NCBI GenBank assembly: GCA_977017575.1
Contig: CDRNVI010000088.1
Location: forward strand, 62,001 to 126,000
From: Paramoeba atlantica
Lineage: Eukaryota > Protista > Discosea
Direction: 5' to 3'
DNA length: 64,000 nucleotides
In this document: one piece after another, positions 11,058 through 63,374 of the stretch
Position numbering within the stretch: the stretch's first letter is position 1
Layout of the letters: each line of letters starts with the position of its first letter
Notes under the pieces: model-generated
Databases searched by the model: none
Seen by the model: the letters and a program-made list of their open reading frames with translations, nothing else
Told to the model about the DNA's origin: nothing
Position numbers and translations under genes: made by a program

Positions 11058-12100
11058 ATGGACTGTCCAGGGTGCCCAACATTGGCCTGTTTGGCATTGG
11101 TGACTTCGATTCTACAGATAACAGCTAAAAATGTTGTTCCGTGGATGAAGAATCATTCATTCGGGGCGGACACTTCTTGTTTTCGGGGCGGAGCAATAAC
11201 CAGTTTGGTCTGGATATTCAGGAAATAGAGCATGTTTTCAGTATTCCTCGTGCTCCTCCGACTCACATGAGATATCTAATGGTGGATGAGACATACATGT
11301 ATATTGGTAAACGGCTGCACCACCGTGGTCACCAAACTCGAAAACGTAAGTTCTGGTTTATGACCGCAACTGAAGTTGATGAGCAAAGCGGAGAATCAAT
11401 ACAAACGCATTGGGAAATTACTCTCACGCGCACAAGAGTAGTAGAGTGTACGATGCTATGACTTTGTACGATCAGTGATAGCAAGCCGGAATTCCCTTGT
11501 TATTGCAGATGAATGGCGGGCGTATCAAGGAAAGATAGCTTTTGTCGACATCTAACTATATGTCATGCAGACGCGTTTTCTAGGGAGCACTCCCCTCATG
11601 TAACGGTCCATACTAACAACGCTGAAGCGGTGCATTCTTCTATTAAGGGTTATTGCAAGCGATTCTTTCACACGTGGGGTAGGGATTTGACCTCCTGCCA
11701 AGCCCGAGGCCGGTTTATTACATCCATTTTTTTTAAAACACCCGTGCAAAAACGATTTCAAAAACTGATGGTCATCATGAAAGGGCATTCGTCTGACACT
11801 ACTATGCCATCATTTCATCATCACGGTATATCAACACAGCTTCGCAATGATGATGAATCAGAAGATTCTGAGGACTCCAGCGATGATTCCGATGCAGGGG
11901 CTCCAACGACACGCTTAGGCCGGGCTTTGAATGAGCACATTCGACTACGAAGGAGGTATGGAAGAGAGAAAACAGGCGACTTTAAGTACCAGGTCCAAGG
12001 AGCCACAGATCGCCGTTACACCGTCTATATTGGCACTGGGGGAACTCAATGCACGTGTCCAGACGGCCGTAGAGGGAACAGATGCAAGCACATTTATATA
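11058..12100 (+). pseudogene. Merlin (IS1595/ISXO2-like) DDE transposase pseudogene with C-terminal SWIM finger, 5' part
   Basis: CPGC start; YLMVDETYMYIGKRLHHRG (D1); SLVIADEWRAY at about 11496-11525 in a third frame (D2); VHTNNAEAVHSSIK (E); in-frame CTCPD..RCKH SWIM; at least two frameshifts. Confidence 0.85.
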
Positions 12101-12376
12101 CAGTCCAGGTACTGGTTTCCCCCCCCCAGGCTCCTGAGCACACCGTAAGAGCTTTTGACCTAATTCCTTCGACATTCAACGGATCTCGAAAAAGTAGAGC
12201 GTTTCTCGTCGTTTTTTTGCCCATCACCCCCCCTGGGTCAAAAATATTTTGAAAACACACGAAAAAATAGCATAATTTTAACAAAAATATCCAATACTTC
12301 AAAAAATTAGGAGTTTTTTATCAAATATGGTTTCTTATTCTATGAATTTGAGGGATACCCCCGTTAAATCTACTAA

Positions 12377-13945
12377 AAGTACTCCAACTCGGCGAAAAAC
12401 AAGACACCCCCTATTACCCATAAAACTTCGCGATGTGCACTCCCAGAGCGCCTTGAAATTGTCCGCCAATATAGAAAAGGAAATTCGATTCATACTTTAG
12501 CTAAAACTTTTGGCAGGGACAGAAAGACTGTCCGTGAAATTCTGTCTACGTGGAAGTCTAAAAGTCCACTAGAACCCAAACCCCACCCAAGCCCTGGTTT
12601 CTCTGTGTCTACGAAGCCATTCAGGGCGGCACTCGTCAAAGTTGTTGACGATGCTAACAAAACAATCGATGGCTGCCCATCCTTTCCTTGGGTACATAAC
12701 GAAATGATTAAAAAGGGGTTTCATTGCTCTCTAAGCACAATAAAGAAAACTCTACGTTCATTAAATTACCTACTACAAGCAAAAGCACCTAGCTGCGAGT
12801 TAAAGCAACATCACAAAGAGGCCCGCTTAAGTCTAGCAGAGTCTTTATTGTCCTTTCCCAAAGAAAAATTAGATTCTATAATTTGGACGGACGAAAAAAA
12901 AATTACATGTGGTTCAAAGACTTACTCTCACTTTTTTATCGGAAAGAAAGGATGTACCAAAATTAAAATGAGGAGAAACAACCGATGGTTTGGTGGTAAA
13001 GGTGTCATGGTATGGATGGGAATCAGTGTGAAACACGGCCCTTTTTTGCATTTGTTTTCATCCCAATCGCAAGGTAAAAAAATTAGGGATGCAAGTTCCG
13101 TGAATCGCGCATGTCTTACTAATGTGATTTTATGTAAAATTTTAGAGGATTCGTTTCCAGGCCTGCGAGGCTTAATATAGCTTAAATTTATCGATACACT
13201 TTTCATTATCATATCTTTCGGAACTTAATGTCCCTTCAAACTTTTAAATTCTACTTTGCCAGTAAGCAACGCATCACTTCGCATCACTTTGTCACCTTTT
13301 CTGCCCTCTTGCAGGACTGTTTCGCGTGTCGCAATTCGCTCGCTTTCAAAACGTCATACGAAAACTGGTCGAATTCCAAACGGAGCTGAAAAGGAGTTTC
13401 GGCGCTCGACGGATGATAAACACACCAGCGTTTCGTGCACGTTTCGAAGCGTTGTCTGATCCTGCCAACGCCCTCCGCACTGCCACCTGTTTCGCTATCC
13501 AATGCAACCGCCTTCAGGTGACCGCAGGACTGTTTCGCGTGTTTCCGTGAAGGGTGAAACGATTCTCGTTGAGTGTTTTTCAAAAAGGGGGGGTATTCTT
13601 GAATATTTAGTTGAAAATAGAGAACAAGCGATTGTGCAAATGGACAATGCGGCCACGCATAACAATACGAAGCGTGTCCTTTTCGAAAAAGGAATTACTC
13701 GATTGGAGTGGCCAGCACTCTCTCCTGACCTCAATCCGATCGAGAATGTTTGGTCAATAATGGACCGAATTGTGAAAGAAATTCTGAAGCCAGAGACTGA
13801 AACACAGCTCCGGAAGGCAATAAAGAAAGCCTTCATGATGCTTAAGCGTCATCCTTATCGACGCCAAGTCTTAAATTGCATAAATTCAGTACCTAAACGC
13901 TTGCGAATAGTGCAGAGCGTTCAAGGAGACCATTGTGGGTATTAA
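12377..13945 (+). pseudogene. Tc1-like transposase (DD32E) interrupted by a 438-bp insertion; no ATG in the open 5' frame
   Basis: HTH LAKTFGRDRKTVREIL; IIWTDEKK; GGKGVMVW; QMDNAATH; WPALSPDLNPIENVW; both halves are in the same frame. Confidence 0.85.
13105..13542. mobile_element. 438-bp unclassified insertion with 9-bp target duplication TTCCGTGAA
   Basis: TTCCGTGAA at 13096-13104 and 13543-13551; removing 447 bp fuses DASSV to KGETIL in frame; internal 19-bp direct repeat GCAGGACTGTTTCGCGTGT (13311, 13524). Confidence 0.7.
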
Positions 13946-13946
13946 T

Positions 13947-13966
13947 ACAGTTTCTGTACCTTGTTG
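13947..13966 (+). other. Spliced-leader-like 20-mer at the 5' end of the retrotransposon
   Basis: ACAGTTTCTGTACCTTGTTG; 18/20 identical to the recalled kinetoplastid SL exon 3' end ACAGTTTCTGTACTTTATTG; followed by 29 nt then ATG at 13996. Confidence 0.75.
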
Positions 13967-13995
13967 ATTTTTTTTTCCCTACCCTTTACAACGAC

Positions 13996-16900
13996 ATGTT
14001 TTGCTTACTACTAGGGAAGGGCACACACCAGGCGTCGCAGGACTCTCCTAAGAGACCACGCGACGTGTCTAACCAAAACAAAAACCTGTCCCTGAAAGGC
14101 ACTCCCACAGACAGGGTTGCAAAATCTGCTACCCGAACCGTCCAGGCTCTATCCCAAAAGAGCAATGAGTCCCTTACCAGCGACACAGGAGAAGCACCCC
14201 CAGCTCCATGCAAACATCCTTGTAAGGACAAAAGCACCTGCGGACACCCCTGTTGCAAGCGGGGTGTAACGCGGCCACATATCCTGGTCACTCCTCACAC
14301 AAACGAACTTCCCCCTCACCCCGTCCCCCCCACCACACAACAAACGGTTCCGGAGTGCAAACACCGCTGCAAGGACAAAGCTCACTGTGAACACCCATGC
14401 TGCAAACGACACCTGGTACGCGTAGCAAAACCGGATACGTACAACAATAAGAGAAGTGACGTACCGGTGGATGCAAGAGAAGACGTGAAGGTGATCACGG
14501 CTGTGAGTGTAATGCCGGTACAACGTAGCACACCCTGTAAGCATGTCTGTAAAAACAAACAGACCTGCGGGCACCCATGTTGCAAACGTAATCTTACACC
14601 AACAACATACGAACTCACGAGCACTACGGCGAGCGGTCAAGAATCCGGGCCCAAAGAAGCTCCAAGTACGCGACAAAGGGACGAAACGTCACCGCCATGC
14701 GCGCGTGACCGCGTAACACAGGATGTGAAAGTACCGAAATCAAGCAACCTACTTGGCATGGCAGCGCGAGCTGCAACACGATATCTGTTTTCAAGCCGCA
14801 CTCAACCGTACGCTAACGGCACTCCCTCAACCCCGGCGGTAACCGTACGACCTCACAGCAGCACCGGACAGGAACGCTTGTCGTACACAATAGCACCCTG
14901 TCCAAAAGACGAACACGATTTACATGTACCCCCACCCAAGGAGGTTACTCCCCATCAAAAATCACCCACTGTTACCGTCGGTCGTGCCGTCGCATCAACT
15001 GCCTGCTCGCTTGCCAAATTCCTACCTTTCAACGGCGTTCCATGTCAAACTCCGGACTCCCAAAGCCTCCCCAAACCTAAATCTCAAACACAACTTCAGG
15101 TCCACGCCTTAACTAGCGTATGCAAGCATATCTGCAAGAGTAAAGATCAATGTAAGCACGTGTGCTGCAAGCAAGGCCTAGGCCCCGCCTCCGAACAAGC
15201 AGACCGTGTCGAGCCCTGTAAGCATAAATGTAAGAACAAAGCAGGGTGCGGCCATCCTTGCTGCAAACGCACTGGCACACCGTTGACTTCGCTTGACACA
15301 CCGATAAGCAAACTGGATGGGCAGGATACTCTACCCACCGGCCCATGTACCCTTCCCAAGAATCTCGTCACACCGTCCCTAAACGCAACCACTACGACAG
15401 CTGACCGTGCCGTTGCCAGGGAACCAACCATCCCGACTCCCAAAAACAAGGCACCGGAAAGTATCATTCTCTTGGACTCACCTTCCCCAGCACACCAACA
15501 CAGTCCGCGGAATGAGAATGGCGATGACGAAGTCCCATCCTGGGTTTTCCAACAAGCGCACAGCGTAGGGCGAATACAAAGCCCGCCGCTTGAACAAGGA
15601 AGCCTCTTACCCCCATCACAACTGGACACCCATTTACATTCGGATGAATCCGAGGGTCCCCAGATTCCCACACAAACTCCCGACAGCCCGTCACAGTATC
15701 TCCCGCCGCCCCAGGACCCCACGCATCCCGTAACCCATAACCGACACAAGCAACGTTTCCACTTTATCCAGTCCCGGTCAAAACCTGTCAAACTCCGCCT
15801 CGTCAACGACAACACATGGAGATATTTCCCGGATGTGCATGCAGCATGCGTAAGCCAACTTGTGCGTAGTCGTATCCCTTCCCCCCAGGGGGCTGAAGCC
15901 GCCCTGTCCAAAGCGCTCAATGGGAAAAGTGCAGCACACGACATCGTCGTAGAAACGTGTACCGTAGACGAACTTATGGAAAAGAGAGCGTGTGACTTTT
16001 TAGAAGTTAGTAGAGTAGACTCAACAAGTCACATTTCTCGCCACGCGAACTGGGTATCTCTTTTTCACGACAGCCGCCTGGAATTATACAACCACTACGC
16101 ATCACCTAGCTCAATGGGTAAAGCGGTAAACAAGGTACTGAACGGGAGAGCGGTCCCTGGGTTATCGGCGTTTCGGATCGTTCTGCTCCTTCGCACCGAC
16201 GACAAAGAAGAAGTACAGCCATCAAAGCCCCAAACGGTCCCAACACTTCCACCATACGAGATTATTTCGCGTGACCACGCCTCCTCCTTGAAGCGGACGC
16301 ACCCATGCCAACATCGATGCATAAGTAAACTCAAATGCAGCCATCCATGCTGCAAAATCTATGGACCATCCCTCGATCAGGGAATCGAAGGAGACTCTGA
16401 GGGGAGCCCCAACGCAGGACAAGAGCAAGAACACCCCGAACTTAACCCCCCCACTTCCGCTTCCTCTCCGAGACTACTCGACGAGACGGAGTACCTTTTC
16501 CGCACGGCACGATACATCCAGGGGGGCAAGTTAAACATAAACTTGGCTGACGCGCACTGGCACGAGGTGGAACGTAGGGCCCTCCACAGATGCAACACCT
16601 TGCTCACTGTCTCTGGCGACGCACTCTCCGCCGTCCATAACGCAGAACTACTGAGTGCAATACTAGCGGTGTCGGCATATGAAGTGGCGCGAGACGTCGA
16701 CTCCAGGAAGGGTTTCATTATCCGAACGGCTCGAGGACATATAAAGGGGAAAGTCCGTCCATTAGAAAGCGAAAAAGTTGCCTTTTCCTTCTCTCGACAT
16801 GTAAAACAACTACAAATGAAGCTGCGATACACACACGGCAAGGCTCCCCGCATGGCGTTGAAACAAAAGATTAAGGAAACCAAAAAGGCGGAACGTATAT

Positions 16901-19443
16901 ACAGCGCAGAAGCCATGGCCCAAAAACGGGAACTGGAAAGTCGCTGGGCACTTCAACAATTCAACCGCAATCCATGGACGGCTGCGAGTCAAACCTTGGA
17001 CAAAAGGACAGAAGCAGAAAGTGTACCGGCCTATCCGACTTGCAATGTACAGAAAGTGGAAAGTGTGTTCACAACATTACTTACGGACCCCACTACAGTG
17101 CATCACTTACCACCCCACGACGTCCTCGGAAACCGTCCTCTGGCAGAAATGACCTGGGACGAACTGGCTTCAATCGACATTTCGAACGCTCTCACATCAA
17201 AGAAAAACAGCAGTGCTCCAGGCCAGGACTCCATTACGTACCAGACTCTAAAGCGATGCCACAGCTCCCACACCCACATGGCAAACGTCTTCAACGCGCT
17301 AGTGCGCTTCAGCACATGTCCGACGTCGTGGAAAATATCCGTCACTCGCCTCATTTACAAAAAAGGGGAGCCTGACAACCCACAAAACTGGCGTCCCATC
17401 GGCCTGACTAGCGTACTAGGGAAACTCCTGCATTCCATCATCAGCCGGAAAATGACGAAATTCCTACTTGAAGCCTCTGTCATTGACCCCAAGATACAGA
17501 AAGGCTTTCTCCCCGCCATTAACGGTACTCTCGAACATACGCAATCCCTCTCAGAGCTCCTACGCCACTACCGGAAGAACAAGTGGAACTACTGCATGGC
17601 CCAGCTAGACCTCAGTAACGCCTTTGGTTCACTCCCCCGCAACATCATCTTTGAAGCACTGGAATGGGCGAGAATCTCCCCAAACATTATTAAATACGTC
17701 CAATGCTTATACACTGACGCAAGTACCCGCATTAAATGTTACGAAGGTCTGTCCAGCGCGATCCCAGCTAAACGAGGTGTCTTACAAGGTGACACTCTCT
17801 CTCCTACGCTCTTTCTGGTGATTATGGAGCTAGCCCTACGTTACATGGCAAAATCGTTTCCCTCATTTGGATTGAACCTCCCTGGATTTCCAAAAAGCTT
17901 CCTAAAAGCGTACGCCGACGATCTCACGGTCCTGACGAATAGTGAAAAAGAAATGCAACTGGCTGTTGAAACACTATCCACGGTACTCAGTTCGCTTGGC
18001 CTTTCCATCAACGTCAAAAAGTGCAGAGTCCAATATATGGCGTCCAAGAAAAATGATGAACACCCCGGCTACATGACACGACGTCCTCAAATTTTCATCA
18101 AGAACGAAGCTATACCGCATATATGCGACGAAGGAAGTACGTTTCTTGGCATGAATATTGCCCCCGGTTCTCAACAATCCCGAGCCCTTTTCACGAAAGT
18201 TAGGCCCTTATTGAAGCGATGGCTTCATAACATTGACCAGTCGGCCCACGACCTCCCATCAAAAATTTGGATATATCAACACGCAATCATCTCTCGGCTA
18301 CGCTTCACCTTTACTATACACCCATGTATCACGCTCAACTTTATTTTACGCCTTCAGAAAATGTGTACTCACTCCCTGAAACGGTGGATCAATGCGGCTA
18401 GAACTACATGCAGCGAAGCAATCTACTCTCAGCGTGGATGGAACATCTGCAGCTTGTCCAGACTCTGGGAGGACTGTACAGCTGATCTTCTCTGTCAAAT
18501 GAAGCGGTCCCGAGACCCGAACGTTACCGCCGCACTGCAGGAAAGAATACGGGCTGAAGAACATAAGCGCAGGAAAGGCCAAGTTCGACCAGCATGTGAC
18601 ATCACACACATACTGGAGGATCGCGACCTCGCAAAACGAACTCTTCTTGAGCTTAATGAGGACCGAATGATCAACGCACTACGCCGCAGGTCAACGTTCG
18701 CTATTCAGTGGTGGGATATAGCCTCCGAGGAAGAACAGGCGAAAGATTTCAGCGCCGCGATAAACGGACTACGTAGCACTTCCCTTAGCCGCTTCGCAAC
18801 TTCTTTAATGGTACAAAACACTCTCCCTACTAGGACAATGCTGAGGACATGGGGAATTCACGGCACAGATACAGTACAATGCCGAATTTGTAAACAAGAA
18901 CCGGAAACATTACGACACCTCTTATCCTCGTGCAAGGTATCACTAGAACAGGGACGTTACACGTATCGCCATGATTGTGTACTCTCCACCTTTGCAAACG
19001 CGATACTCTCTTCCCCCCATACCGCAGAGGCACATTTTGATCTCCCACACCTACGTCAACTACCCGCATGGTGGTCCGACCTGGAAACACAGCTTCGCCC
19101 AGATGGAATCGTCAAACTCAACGACGGAACTGAATTTATCGTTGAGTTGACGATGCCCTGGGAGGAAAACGTACACGAAGCCCACTGCCGAAAAGTAGAA
19201 AAGTACATAAATATTCTACACCGACGAAAAATAAGGTACTCAGACTGCCACTTGATATGCTTTGAAGTTGGAGCTAGAGGTCTCCCTTCTACGACGCTGC
19301 GTCACATCAACCGTCTCTTTTTGGGTGACAAGGCACTCTCAGATAAGTGCCGTGTCGAAGTCATCCGAACGGCGATCCGGAGCAGCTTTCAACTCTGGCT
19401 GAAAAGGGAATCCCCTTTATGGGACAACCAAAGCTTTGGTTAG
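13996..19443 (+). CDS. 1815-aa retrotransposon protein: 6x CxHxCx5CxHxCC fingers, RT, CCHC knuckle, PD-(D/E)xK REL endonuclease
   Basis: SAPGQDSI, LIYKKG..NWRPIGL, QKGF, LDLSNAFG, GVLQGDTLSP, YADD; CRIC..ETLRHLLSSC; YTYRHDCV, LRPDGIV, IVELTMPWE, RKVEKY, FEVGARG. Confidence 0.95.
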   Translation: MFCLLLGKGTHQASQDSPKRPRDVSNQNKNLSLKGTPTDRVAKSATRTVQALSQKSNESLTSDTGEAPPAPCKHPCKDKSTCGHPCCKRGVTRPHILVTPHTNELPPHPVPPTTQQTVPECKHRCKDKAHCEHPCCKRHLVRVAKPDTYNNKRSDVPVDAREDVKVITAVSVMPVQRSTPCKHVCKNKQTCGHPCCKRNLTPTTYELTSTTASGQESGPKEAPSTRQRDETSPPCARDRVTQDVKVPKSSNLLGMAARAATRYLFSSRTQPYANGTPSTPAVTVRPHSSTGQERLSYTIAPCPKDEHDLHVPPPKEVTPHQKSPTVTVGRAVASTACSLAKFLPFNGVPCQTPDSQSLPKPKSQTQLQVHALTSVCKHICKSKDQCKHVCCKQGLGPASEQADRVEPCKHKCKNKAGCGHPCCKRTGTPLTSLDTPISKLDGQDTLPTGPCTLPKNLVTPSLNATTTTADRAVAREPTIPTPKNKAPESIILLDSPSPAHQHSPRNENGDDEVPSWVFQQAHSVGRIQSPPLEQGSLLPPSQLDTHLHSDESEGPQIPTQTPDSPSQYLPPPQDPTHPVTHNRHKQRFHFIQSRSKPVKLRLVNDNTWRYFPDVHAACVSQLVRSRIPSPQGAEAALSKALNGKSAAHDIVVETCTVDELMEKRACDFLEVSRVDSTSHISRHANWVSLFHDSRLELYNHYASPSSMGKAVNKVLNGRAVPGLSAFRIVLLLRTDDKEEVQPSKPQTVPTLPPYEIISRDHASSLKRTHPCQHRCISKLKCSHPCCKIYGPSLDQGIEGDSEGSPNAGQEQEHPELNPPTSASSPRLLDETEYLFRTARYIQGGKLNINLADAHWHEVERRALHRCNTLLTVSGDALSAVHNAELLSAILAVSAYEVARDVDSRKGFIIRTARGHIKGKVRPLESEKVAFSFSRHVKQLQMKLRYTHGKAPRMALKQKIKETKKAERIYSAEAMAQKRELESRWALQQFNRNPWTAASQTLDKRTEAESVPAYPTCNVQKVESVFTTLLTDPTTVHHLPPHDVLGNRPLAEMTWDELASIDISNALTSKKNSSAPGQDSITYQTLKRCHSSHTHMANVFNALVRFSTCPTSWKISVTRLIYKKGEPDNPQNWRPIGLTSVLGKLLHSIISRKMTKFLLEASVIDPKIQKGFLPAINGTLEHTQSLSELLRHYRKNKWNYCMAQLDLSNAFGSLPRNIIFEALEWARISPNIIKYVQCLYTDASTRIKCYEGLSSAIPAKRGVLQGDTLSPTLFLVIMELALRYMAKSFPSFGLNLPGFPKSFLKAYADDLTVLTNSEKEMQLAVETLSTVLSSLGLSINVKKCRVQYMASKKNDEHPGYMTRRPQIFIKNEAIPHICDEGSTFLGMNIAPGSQQSRALFTKVRPLLKRWLHNIDQSAHDLPSKIWIYQHAIISRLRFTFTIHPCITLNFILRLQKMCTHSLKRWINAARTTCSEAIYSQRGWNICSLSRLWEDCTADLLCQMKRSRDPNVTAALQERIRAEEHKRRKGQVRPACDITHILEDRDLAKRTLLELNEDRMINALRRRSTFAIQWWDIASEEEQAKDFSAAINGLRSTSLSRFATSLMVQNTLPTRTMLRTWGIHGTDTVQCRICKQEPETLRHLLSSCKVSLEQGRYTYRHDCVLSTFANAILSSPHTAEAHFDLPHLRQLPAWWSDLETQLRPDGIVKLNDGTEFIVELTMPWEENVHEAHCRKVEKYINILHRRKIRYSDCHLICFEVGARGLPSTTLRHINRLFLGDKALSDKCRVEVIRTAIRSSFQLWLKRESPLWDNQSFG

Positions 19444-19756
19444 CAAATGGTCTAGCAGGCGACGTCATATGCGTACGTCCTGTTAGACTTTATTACTCTA
19501 CAGGTAATGCCCTGTATAGATATAATATTACATACACCTTTTTTGTCATTTTTTACCCCCCTTCAAAAATATTTTTATTTTTGAAATTTGCCATCTTTGA
19601 TCACACCCACCCAGAACCCAGGGGGGGTGATGGGCAAACAAACGGCGGAAAACGCTCTACTTTTTCGAGATCCGTTGAATGCCGAAGGAATTAGGTCAAA
19701 AGATCTTACGGTGTTCTCAGGAGCCTGGGGGGGGGGAAACCAATACCTGGACTGTA

Positions 19757-61733: not shown

Positions 61734-63374
61734 TCACTCCTGAAGATCATCGGAATCCTCTATTTCGTCGTCGTTGTTACTGACGCAAGTGTCGCCAGAC
61801 ACAGAATGATTATCTGCTGACACAACGTCGTAATATTCTTCTCGTAAATGTTTTTTCCACCCTTCAGGATCAGCAGCATTATACGATGACCAAAGCGAAG
61901 CTACGAAATGCTTCGGTAGACTTCGCTTTTTTCTTTCATATTTCGCTTCAATAGAAGGAGCTGAGGTTCTTGCTATTTTCTTACTTAAAGGAAGGATTCT
62001 ATTTCCGTCTACTGCCAATTTAGACCTCCAGTTTCTTGAACCACTATGAATATTTTTTGTTTCAAGAATTGTTGGGAGGGAGTCACTCTTTTTCGATTCT
62101 TTGGTAGGTGGGAGTGCATCAGGAAGAAGTAGTTCATCACAAAAAAGAATAGAGTGCAATAAACAATCATCTTCATCCTGACGCCATTTCGTGTAAGAAA
62201 CAGAACATTTCGGCATAAAGGGAGGAGCTGTGCACGGTTGCCATTTTTTAGCAACATTTGGATTAGCGTTGAAAGTACGATATGCACAGATGACACATTC
62301 CAAAGGAAGTATTTCTCGCACAAAGAAGTTTGAGGATGATGTTGGAATGATTTCGTCCGCACACGCTATGTCCAAATAGACAGCGGCTGCGCCTTCTATG
62401 TTTTCTGCATCAAAAAATTGAAGCATGTTATGATGAAAAAAAGAAAGCAAACGCATTCCTGACACTTCTGGCAAACTGTATAATATTTCTTGCACAGTAT
62501 AAGGTCTTCCGTAGAGAAAACGTGCCGTTGCATGACCTATATTCAGATAAGCATCTCTATTCTGCGGGTTCGGAATTACACTGGTTTGCTTTACTGGTTC
62601 TTTATCGATGTCGATAACGTCGACACCTTTCTTTGGCAAGAGTATACCAGTTTGCTGGTGCGACGGTTCGGCTTTCGTAGTCTTACGTGAAGATCGGTAC
62701 TTTAGAAGAACCCACTGCAGTTGCACGGTAGCAGCACGAATATCACCTGCATCCTCCGCTATGCCCGAAATTGTGTCTCTGATCCCAATTTCGGAAGAAA
62801 AATGGCAAAGGTTCGTTATGTGTTCCAGGCAACGCTTGATAGAAGCTGTCGTAACTGGTGGGACACGTATGAATTCCACATTCGAGGATACCAAAAACTG
62901 TTCCGAAAACCACTCTCGCAGTGCGGTTCGTTCGCTGTAGACGTCTGAGGTGGTGCACATAAAAATCGCTTTGATTCGTGCCTCACGTACTTGAGCAAGA
63001 AATCGGTCGGTTAATCTGTCTCGAAACGCCCTCTGCAATGGACATGTACTTTGAGGAATAACATTTTCGAATACCGTCACGTAGGATCTATTGTCTAGAG
63101 AGCTATTCAGCAGAAGCGCAAGCTCACGAATAGTCCACTCCTCATTAAACACTCTTCTACAAGAAATCTGTCTTTCTGCAATCATTAAGTCCATCGAAGT
63201 GCGCTTGCCGCATCCTGGAGGACCGTGTACAACAAGAACTAACCCGTTCGAAGAATTCATCATCCTGTCGACAGCATTATTAATTTCTTTATTTTTTTGG
63301 TGAGATAGTGTACTGCGAGCAATAGGAACTGCCTTATGTTTTATATTACAAAAGAGACATGACGCACCAACCAT
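61734..63374 (-). CDS. RAD17: RAD17/Rad24-like checkpoint clamp loader
   Basis: VVHGPPGCGK, IRVPPVTTASIKRCL, GDIRAATVQLQW, RDAYLNIGHATARFLYG. Confidence 0.8.
   Translation of the reverse strand: MVGASCLFCNIKHKAVPIARSTLSHQKNKEINNAVDRMMNSSNGLVLVVHGPPGCGKRTSMDLMIAERQISCRRVFNEEWTIRELALLLNSSLDNRSYVTVFENVIPQSTCPLQRAFRDRLTDRFLAQVREARIKAIFMCTTSDVYSERTALREWFSEQFLVSSNVEFIRVPPVTTASIKRCLEHITNLCHFSSEIGIRDTISGIAEDAGDIRAATVQLQWVLLKYRSSRKTTKAEPSHQQTGILLPKKGVDVIDIDKEPVKQTSVIPNPQNRDAYLNIGHATARFLYGRPYTVQEILYSLPEVSGMRLLSFFHHNMLQFFDAENIEGAAAVYLDIACADEIIPTSSSNFFVREILPLECVICAYRTFNANPNVAKKWQPCTAPPFMPKCSVSYTKWRQDEDDCLLHSILFCDELLLPDALPPTKESKKSDSLPTILETKNIHSGSRNWRSKLAVDGNRILPLSKKIARTSAPSIEAKYERKKRSLPKHFVASLWSSYNAADPEGWKKHLREEYYDVVSADNHSVSGDTCVSNNDDEIEDSDDLQE

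Follow-up and report, generated by a model that had tools for sequence, protein, structure and literature searches.

The 64,000-nucleotide stretch of DNA analyzed here (the window; positions 62,001 to 126,000 of the forward strand of contig CDRNVI010000088.1, Paramoeba atlantica assembly GCA_977017575.1) carries an intact non-LTR retrotransposon (one that lacks long terminal repeats) whose single protein begins with an array of six small Cys/His fingers. Profile searches confirm computationally that the repeated unit and the finger located behind Sec63 in the Mer3/HFM1 meiotic helicases are one module. We consider it probable (roughly 60%) that the array is a multivalent arm made of zinc-binding units of this type, which would bind nucleic acids with low sequence specificity.

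The finger unit and its counterpart in Mer3/HFM1 helicases

The window was scanned in all six frames with the regular expression C.H.C.{5}C.H.CC, and exactly six matches were found, all of which lie on the forward strand in the open frame that spans positions 13933 to 19443 (Table 1). Fewer than 1e-6 chance matches would be expected in the window, as estimated from typical Cys and His frequencies. An earlier reading of this DNA, made from the sequence alone (the sequence-only reading), had listed six such motifs separated by linkers rich in Pro, Ser, and Thr. All six were recovered in frame at the same starts, and the linker composition agrees with that description (P 13.9%, T 11.5%, S 9.9%). 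The units follow the lysine-rich consensus C-K-H-x-C-K-[D/N]-K-x-x-C-x-H-x-C-C-K, which has five Cys and two His among its 17 residues, and the net charge per finger ranges from +3 to +5. The seven Cys and His residues of each unit are most likely zinc ligands. One might guess that they hold two zinc ions with one bridging cysteine.

A word-indexed search of the N-terminal region of the element against 5.8 billion proteins returned two matches, one of which is a related retrotransposon protein and the other a helicase from Candida boidinii (expectation [E] value of 1.8e-5). In the Candida boidinii protein, DEAD, Helicase_C, wHTH, and Sec63 domains come first, and two fingers stand in tandem behind them. 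We then used an alignment (A1) of 34 retrotransposon finger units, taken from nine loci and from this genome only, to build a HMMER profile that was searched against 1.84 billion representative proteins. This profile identified 183 proteins at a cutoff of E ≤ 1e-3. The strict finger pattern is present in 148 of the 148 profile matches listed, whereas less than one chance match is estimated for 2.4e11 residues. Among the long profile matches, all seven that were tested carry the single-cassette DEAD/Helicase_C/wHTH/Sec63 arrangement with the finger placed after Sec63. Altogether, at least 13 Sec63 helicases of Mer3/HFM1 architecture bear the finger (7 + 1 + 4 + the Candida boidinii protein).

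Six of the finger-bearing helicases carry names in their source records. These include “ATP-dependent DNA helicase MER3” in the fungus Blastocladiella emersonii, “probable ATP-dependent DNA helicase HFM1” in the fish Lepisosteus oculatus and the mite Oppia nitens, and Sec63-domain proteins in Pichia and Halteromyces. The finger of the Lepisosteus oculatus (gar) protein is located at residue 1128 of 1,489, a position that fits the zinc finger motif mentioned for this part of HFM1 in one publication (PMC8383409). Helicase and retrotransposon fingers share the full C-x-H-x-C-x5-C-x-H-x-C-C spacing, and they also have in common the nonligand residues D/N7, K8, and K/R17. They differ in arrangement: the helicases have one or two copies after Sec63, whereas the element has six copies separated by long linkers and placed N-terminal to the reverse transcriptase (RT). 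The sequence-only reading had likened the spacing to that of Mer3/HFM1, and this comparison is borne out both by the Candida boidinii match and by the ability of a profile made exclusively from retrotransposon units to find proteins of this architecture, some of them named MER3 or HFM1.

The host genome itself contains two near-identical genes for single-cassette Sec63 helicases (C30:1034900-1040449 and C3:441307-445962; loci L055, L056, and L058). Both have the DEAD/Helicase_C/wHTH/Sec63 domain set of Mer3/HFM1 and long C-terminal tails, and no finger was found in the tail of either gene. Therefore, the fingers of the retrotransposon were not recently copied from the host's own Mer3-like helicase, and we rejected this origin.

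Carriers of the finger beyond helicases

Proteins from the green algae Trebouxia and Apatococcus have one or two fingers ahead of an RNase_T-type (DEDDh) exonuclease domain, and a related protein has up to three. In this algal group (P0045, P0058, P0043, P0030, and relatives from Trebouxia sp. and Apatococcus fuscideae), most units end with the near-constant tail CCKRHL. Retroelement proteins from other sources carry the finger together with RT, RNase H, Gag with CCHC knuckles, or integrase. The motif is also present on ubiquitin-like, OTU, ankyrin, Myb-like, and coiled-coil proteins from one amoebozoan, one stramenopile, and metagenomes. Most matches of the A1 profile are short fragments with no further domain.

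Because its carriers span helicases, exonucleases, retroelements, and other proteins, the finger is a rare, mobile eukaryotic module, and its identifiable partners are mostly nucleic acid enzymes. The label “Mer3/HFM1-type” given by the sequence-only reading thus holds as a statement of kinship, but the motif is not peculiar to these helicases.

Finger-bearing element families in the host genome

In the 45.7-Mb genome that was searched, matches to the N-terminal region of the element were found at 124 or more places. From divergent families, we examined 13 stretches, each of which encodes two to six strict fingers in open frames of approximately 1,400 to 1,860 amino acids. Two arrangements recur. 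In the first (window, L038, L046, and L047), fingers are followed by a module of approximately 147 amino acids, a last finger, and the RT domain. In the second (L037, L041, L044, and L048), the module comes before the fingers and the RT domain. Among module-first families (L041, L048, and L044, as well as database proteins P0003, P0004, P0029, and P0031), those fingers whose last residues are CCK-E/K-GV have a conserved W-S/T-L/x-R-N/S/G-L motif approximately 10 to 20 residues further on. Another locus (L045; C29:27000-29900, reverse strand) encodes two fingers, then C2H2-like fingers, and then an RT that can barely be aligned with that of the window, and its copies have open frames of approximately 1,400 amino acids. 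Because these two RTs barely align, the finger is common to at least two retroelement lineages in this genome.

All seven Cys and His residues are invariant in the 34 units of alignment A1, and two Lys residues are conserved in at least 90% of them. When the window family is compared with its sister family L038, identity is 59 to 76% in the fingers and 67% in the RT, but only 16 to 28% in the linkers. The fingers are thus conserved islands within a fast-drifting arm. Their number also changes, since finger 4 of the window has no counterpart in L038, and one finger was gained or lost between these sister families. Collectively, these observations show a large, diverse, and recently active radiation of finger-bearing elements in a kinetoplastid-type genome.

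Architecture of the element

The C-terminal half of the open reading frame (ORF) identifies the element as a non-LTR retrotransposon of the restriction-like endonuclease (REL) type, also called the R2 group (Table 1). The endonuclease motifs are of the PD..E..K type, and RHD, RPD, ELT..E, and K..KY occur in the expected order after the CCHC knuckle. These motifs, together with the Pfam matches to RVT_1 and zf-RVT, uphold the proposal of the sequence-only reading that this is an RT-REL retrotransposon. The same reading took the strings ELTMPWE and FEVGARG to be signatures of the HERO clade. Both strings are indeed present, but ELT.P.E and E.G.RG are found in distant RT-REL relatives (P0008 and P0010) as well, and their specificity for HERO is thus not demonstrated. 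The other endonuclease motifs of the window element likewise recur in distant RT-REL relatives. No 2A-like peptide was found between the N-terminal arm and the RT.

Table 1. Features of the retrotransposon copy in the window (positions are those of the 64,000-nucleotide stretch)
Feature	Positions	Strand	Basis
Whole retrotransposon copy of approximately 5.58 kb that interrupts a Tc1-like transposon	13950-19526	+	Matches to its flanks and ends at other genomic places; junction alignments
5' leader: truncated spliced leader (SL)-like fragment GTTTCTGTACCTTGTTG, T-rich tract, and conserved CCCTACCC..GAC immediately before the ATG	13950-13995	+	Comparison of copies
Intact single ORF, 1,815 amino acids from the first ATG	13996-19443	+	Open frame starts at 13933; stop codon TAG at 19441-19443
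Finger 1 (CxHxCx5CxHxCC)	14209-14256	+	Regular expression scan
Finger 2	14356-14403	+	Regular expression scan
Finger 3	14536-14583	+	Regular expression scan
Finger 4 (absent from sister family L038)	15121-15168	+	Regular expression scan and family alignment
Finger 5	15217-15264	+	Regular expression scan
Two-repeat module, approximately 147 amino acids, tentatively a homing-endonuclease-like (NUMOD-like) DNA-binding tandem	15754-16194	+	Cross-family alignment, AlphaFold2 model, and structural matches
Finger 6, RT-proximal; tail CCK-[VI]-[FY]-GP common to L038, L046, and L047	16306-16353	+	Regular expression scan and family comparison
RT domain (YADD at 17911-17922)	17359-18057	+	Pfam RVT_1, E = 3.6e-28
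CCHC knuckle (Cx2Cx8Hx4C) ahead of the endonuclease	18880-18933	+	Pfam zf-RVT, E = 1.2e-7
Restriction-like endonuclease region with RHD, RPD, ELTMPWE (19144-19164), KVEKY, and FEVGARG (19261-19281), in that order	18964-19281	+	Motif positions

The closest full-length RT-REL homologs are proteins from metagenome contigs. Two distant RT-REL relatives from metagenomes (P0010 and P0011; 27 to 28% identity across the entire RT-endonuclease region) are unusual in their accessory domain, a ubiquitin C-terminal hydrolase (UCH) domain located behind the endonuclease. The element is flanked by two ORFs (window positions 11513 to 13945), one of them Merlin-like and ending in a SWIM-like C terminus and the other encoding a Tc1-like transposase, so that a nested stack is formed.

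The finger and the neighboring module were also compared with known domains and structures. Searches with Pfam of the whole ORF, of the finger segments, and of the finger region of the yeast helicase yielded no model that covers the motif. A meaningless match to Keratin_B2_2 (Pfam, E > 1) was set aside, as were zf-NF-X1 and zf-CHCC_shd (ESM Atlas, 0.75), which scored under the trusted level of that tool; in addition, the spacing of NF-X1 differs. No PDB entry matched the sequence of the finger region at E ≤ 10, nor did this search bring up a solved Mer3/HFM1 finger.

The two-repeat module is present in all of the families compared (L038:3589-4122, L046:606-1139, L047:651-1184, L041:2608-3141, L048:2714-3247, L044:28-561, and L037:116-589). 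AlphaFold2, given an alignment of the module (A3), predicts a strand-strand-helix-helix-strand fold that occurs twice, with a predicted local distance difference test (pLDDT) score of 82.8 and a predicted template modeling (pTM) score of 0.70. Of the four structures matched best in a wide VIA search, two are homing endonuclease parts of the NUMOD type, namely the DNA-binding tail of I-HmuI (Z = 7.8) and the DNA-binding domain of I-TevI (Z = 5.3), and each aligns over approximately 60 residues. Their sequence identity to the module is only 7 to 11%, and their Z values fall in the range that denotes a possibly common arrangement. The other two are sCTP-23166 (Z = 6.2, root mean square deviation of 2.0 over 52 residues), which is a small protein from Paulinella that binds DNA, and AcrVA3 (Z = 5.4). 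These four best Z values somewhat exceed the rest (Z ≤ 4.3), although all of them are in the gray zone of the tool. Foldseek gave nothing at E ≤ 0.001, and there was no Pfam match. We tentatively view the module as a homing-endonuclease-like DNA-binding tandem, and we offer this assignment as a lead only.

Copies, insertion sites, and recent movement

The 3' ends of at least 14 copies of the window family are 99 to 100% identical, and four copies have kept open frames of 1,828 to 1,853 amino acids. Therefore, this family moved recently. The copies compared at their 5' junctions (the window copy and L014 to L024) begin at differing points inside one SL-like sequence, ..ATACAGTTTCTGTACCTTGTTG, which we take to be the 3' part of a spliced leader of the trypanosomatid mini-exon kind. 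Next come a T-rich tract, whose length varies, and a conserved leader that extends to the ATG. At the 5' junctions of two copies (L017 and L020), a short CTTGTTG is duplicated. The element ends with ..TAGATATAAT and lacks a poly(A) tail.

The empty site of the window copy could be seen in two uninterrupted Tc1 copies (L050 and L051). Compared with this empty site, the filled Tc1 site is a few target bases short, and no duplication is seen in it. The 3' end of the element, ..ATAGATATAAT (window positions 19514 to 19530), resembles the AT-rich Tc1 target TATTAATATAGGAAT (13939 to 13950), and this resemblance and the lost bases are compatible with priming by microhomology. We considered whether the 12-bp overlap might be a target-site duplication and rejected this interpretation, because the 3' end is merely similar to the AT-rich target and the empty site reveals that bases are missing.

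Approximately 11 independent copies have mutually unrelated flanks, which range from the Tc1 element and further repeats to unique sequence. The sole feature common to these flanks is AT-richness beside the 3' end. Because the flanks are unrelated, we conclude that the element is dispersed and not site specific.

Comparison with known REL-type elements

R2 elements resemble the window element in having a single ORF and the same C-terminal half, with an RT, a CCHC knuckle, and a PD-(D/E)xK-type endonuclease. In R2, N-terminal C2H2 fingers and a Myb domain serve as anchors for DNA and RNA, and the target is 28S rDNA. In contrast, the window element has no C2H2 or Myb domain detectable with Pfam (E ≤ 1), is not inserted in rDNA, and uses another type of finger in up to six copies. 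The NeSL/Utopia elements are also of the REL type and have one to three N-terminal zinc fingers, with a Ulp1-like protease in NeSL proper that is lacking in some Utopia relatives. The window element shares the general feature of N-terminal fingers with these elements, but it has neither a Ulp1 protease (Pfam) nor RNase H, its fingers are of a different type, and it does not target U2 or spliced-leader genes.

The CRE clade (CRE1/2, SLACS, and CZAR) comprises trypanosomatid elements that are inserted at a fixed site within spliced-leader genes, with target-site duplication. A kinetoplastid-type host group, a REL-type endonuclease, and a link to the spliced leader are features that the window element has in common with this clade. 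However, it is only headed by a truncated leader fragment, and its copies have unrelated flanks, an insertion in Tc1, and no target-site duplication. No proteins named SLACS or CZAR appeared among its homologs. Thus, the element lacks the defining features of R2, NeSL proper, and CRE.

The HERO clade is defined by RT phylogeny, inserts mostly without specificity, and is known from animal hosts (fish and leech) in the literature that we compared. Beyond being of the REL type, the window element agrees with HERO only in its mostly non-site-specific insertion, and it differs in having a kinetoplastid-type protist as its host.

Proposed function of the finger array

In the model that we favor, each Cys/His unit would bind zinc, and the P/S/T-rich linkers, which are probably disordered, would join these units into an arm that also includes the folded two-repeat module. 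Together, the array and the module would form a multivalent arm that binds nucleic acids with low sequence specificity and that may hold the RT-endonuclease on its target DNA, on its own RNA, or on both during target-primed reverse transcription. Such a role would parallel that of the C2H2 fingers and Myb domain in R2 and that of the one to three fingers in Utopia. The basic charge of the units, the nucleic acid enzymes among their partners, and the matches of the neighboring module to DNA-binding parts of homing endonucleases all argue for nucleic acid binding.

Several observations weigh against this model. We found no experiment on metal or nucleic acid binding for the motif of any protein in the literature, and the word “zinc” never occurs in three detailed Mer3 papers. 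When a single unit was modeled by using AlphaFold2 with alignment A1, a compact loop and one short helix were predicted with only moderate confidence (pLDDT of 72.6), and this model had no match among solved structures when searched with Foldseek and VIA-align. The ubiquitin-like, OTU, ankyrin, and coiled-coil carriers are not obviously nucleic acid proteins, which makes a protein-binding role possible. Neither a target-site duplication nor a target consensus was seen among the copies compared, and thus there is no direct sign of the arm reading DNA. Finally, none of the RNA sequencing runs on record contains the stretch, and there is accordingly no sign of its expression.

The carriers just mentioned, together with papers that describe Mer3 chiefly through its protein partners, would suit fingers that serve as protein-protein interaction or multimerization modules, either recruiting a host factor or oligomerizing the protein of the element. 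We regard this as an unlikely explanation because the partners of known activity are mostly nucleic acid enzymes (helicase, DEDDh exonuclease, RT, RNase H, and integrase) and the units are strongly basic. Moreover, small fingers strung in arrays along flexible linkers are a typical feature of nucleic acid binders. Another reading, which keeps nucleic acid binding and is speculative and rather improbable in our judgment, is that the unit is a previously unrecognized two-zinc domain that reads the structure of DNA (single-stranded or branched) instead of its sequence. Such a domain would be shared by Mer3/HFM1, exonucleases, and several retroelement lineages, and in the elements described here it would replace the sequence-reading C2H2 and Myb domains and steer integration to structured or single-stranded DNA.

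It is quite improbable that the array reads a defined DNA site in the way that the fingers and Myb domain of R2 read 28S rDNA. The N-terminal fingers of REL-type elements usually recognize targets, as in R2 and Utopia, and AT-rich sequence adjoins the 3' ends of the copies. However, the approximately 11 independent copies lie in unrelated flanks with no shared target beyond this AT-richness, and the number of fingers varies from two to six between families, with one gained or lost even between sister families. The targeting role that the sequence-only reading had offered as an option is therefore not supported. We assign a similarly low probability to the view that the likeness to the Mer3/HFM1 finger arose by convergence on a short Cys/His pattern rather than by common descent. 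The unit is only 17 residues long, structure searches provide no solved counterpart, and the host's single-cassette Sec63 helicase, which lacks the finger, leaves no local donor. Arguing against convergence are the identical spacing and the shared nonligand residues, the recovery of helicases above the whole-database threshold by a profile made of retrotransposon units, and the occurrence of the strict pattern in every listed match of that profile where less than one would be expected by chance. We continue to favor a Mer3/HFM1-type array that would bind nucleic acids with low specificity.

Novelty and implications

Our literature searches found no paper that brings HFM1 and a zinc finger together with a retrotransposon and reverse transcriptase. 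The statement of the sequence-only reading that no description of such an architecture was known to it is in line with this result, and with the finding of neither a Pfam model nor a solved structure for the motif. It is possible that the motif array has been described earlier in a Repbase or Dfam consensus entry. What we consider new is the class of N-terminal arm that this REL-type retrotransposon carries, together with a definition, the first at profile level, that treats the Mer3/HFM1 finger as a mobile domain.

This work defines in sequence terms a domain that lacks a Pfam model and is part of a helicase on which meiotic crossovers depend, and it supplies a profile (A1) and a carrier list for that domain. 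Studies of structure and binding could draw on the many natural variants of the finger in the retrotransposon arrays. A new kind of N-terminal arm is also added to the REL-type group, in which R2 is being engineered for gene insertion and in which N-terminal domains decide docking. Lastly, the radiation of these elements in a kinetoplastid-type genome lies outside the spliced-leader-gene niche that is known from trypanosomatids.

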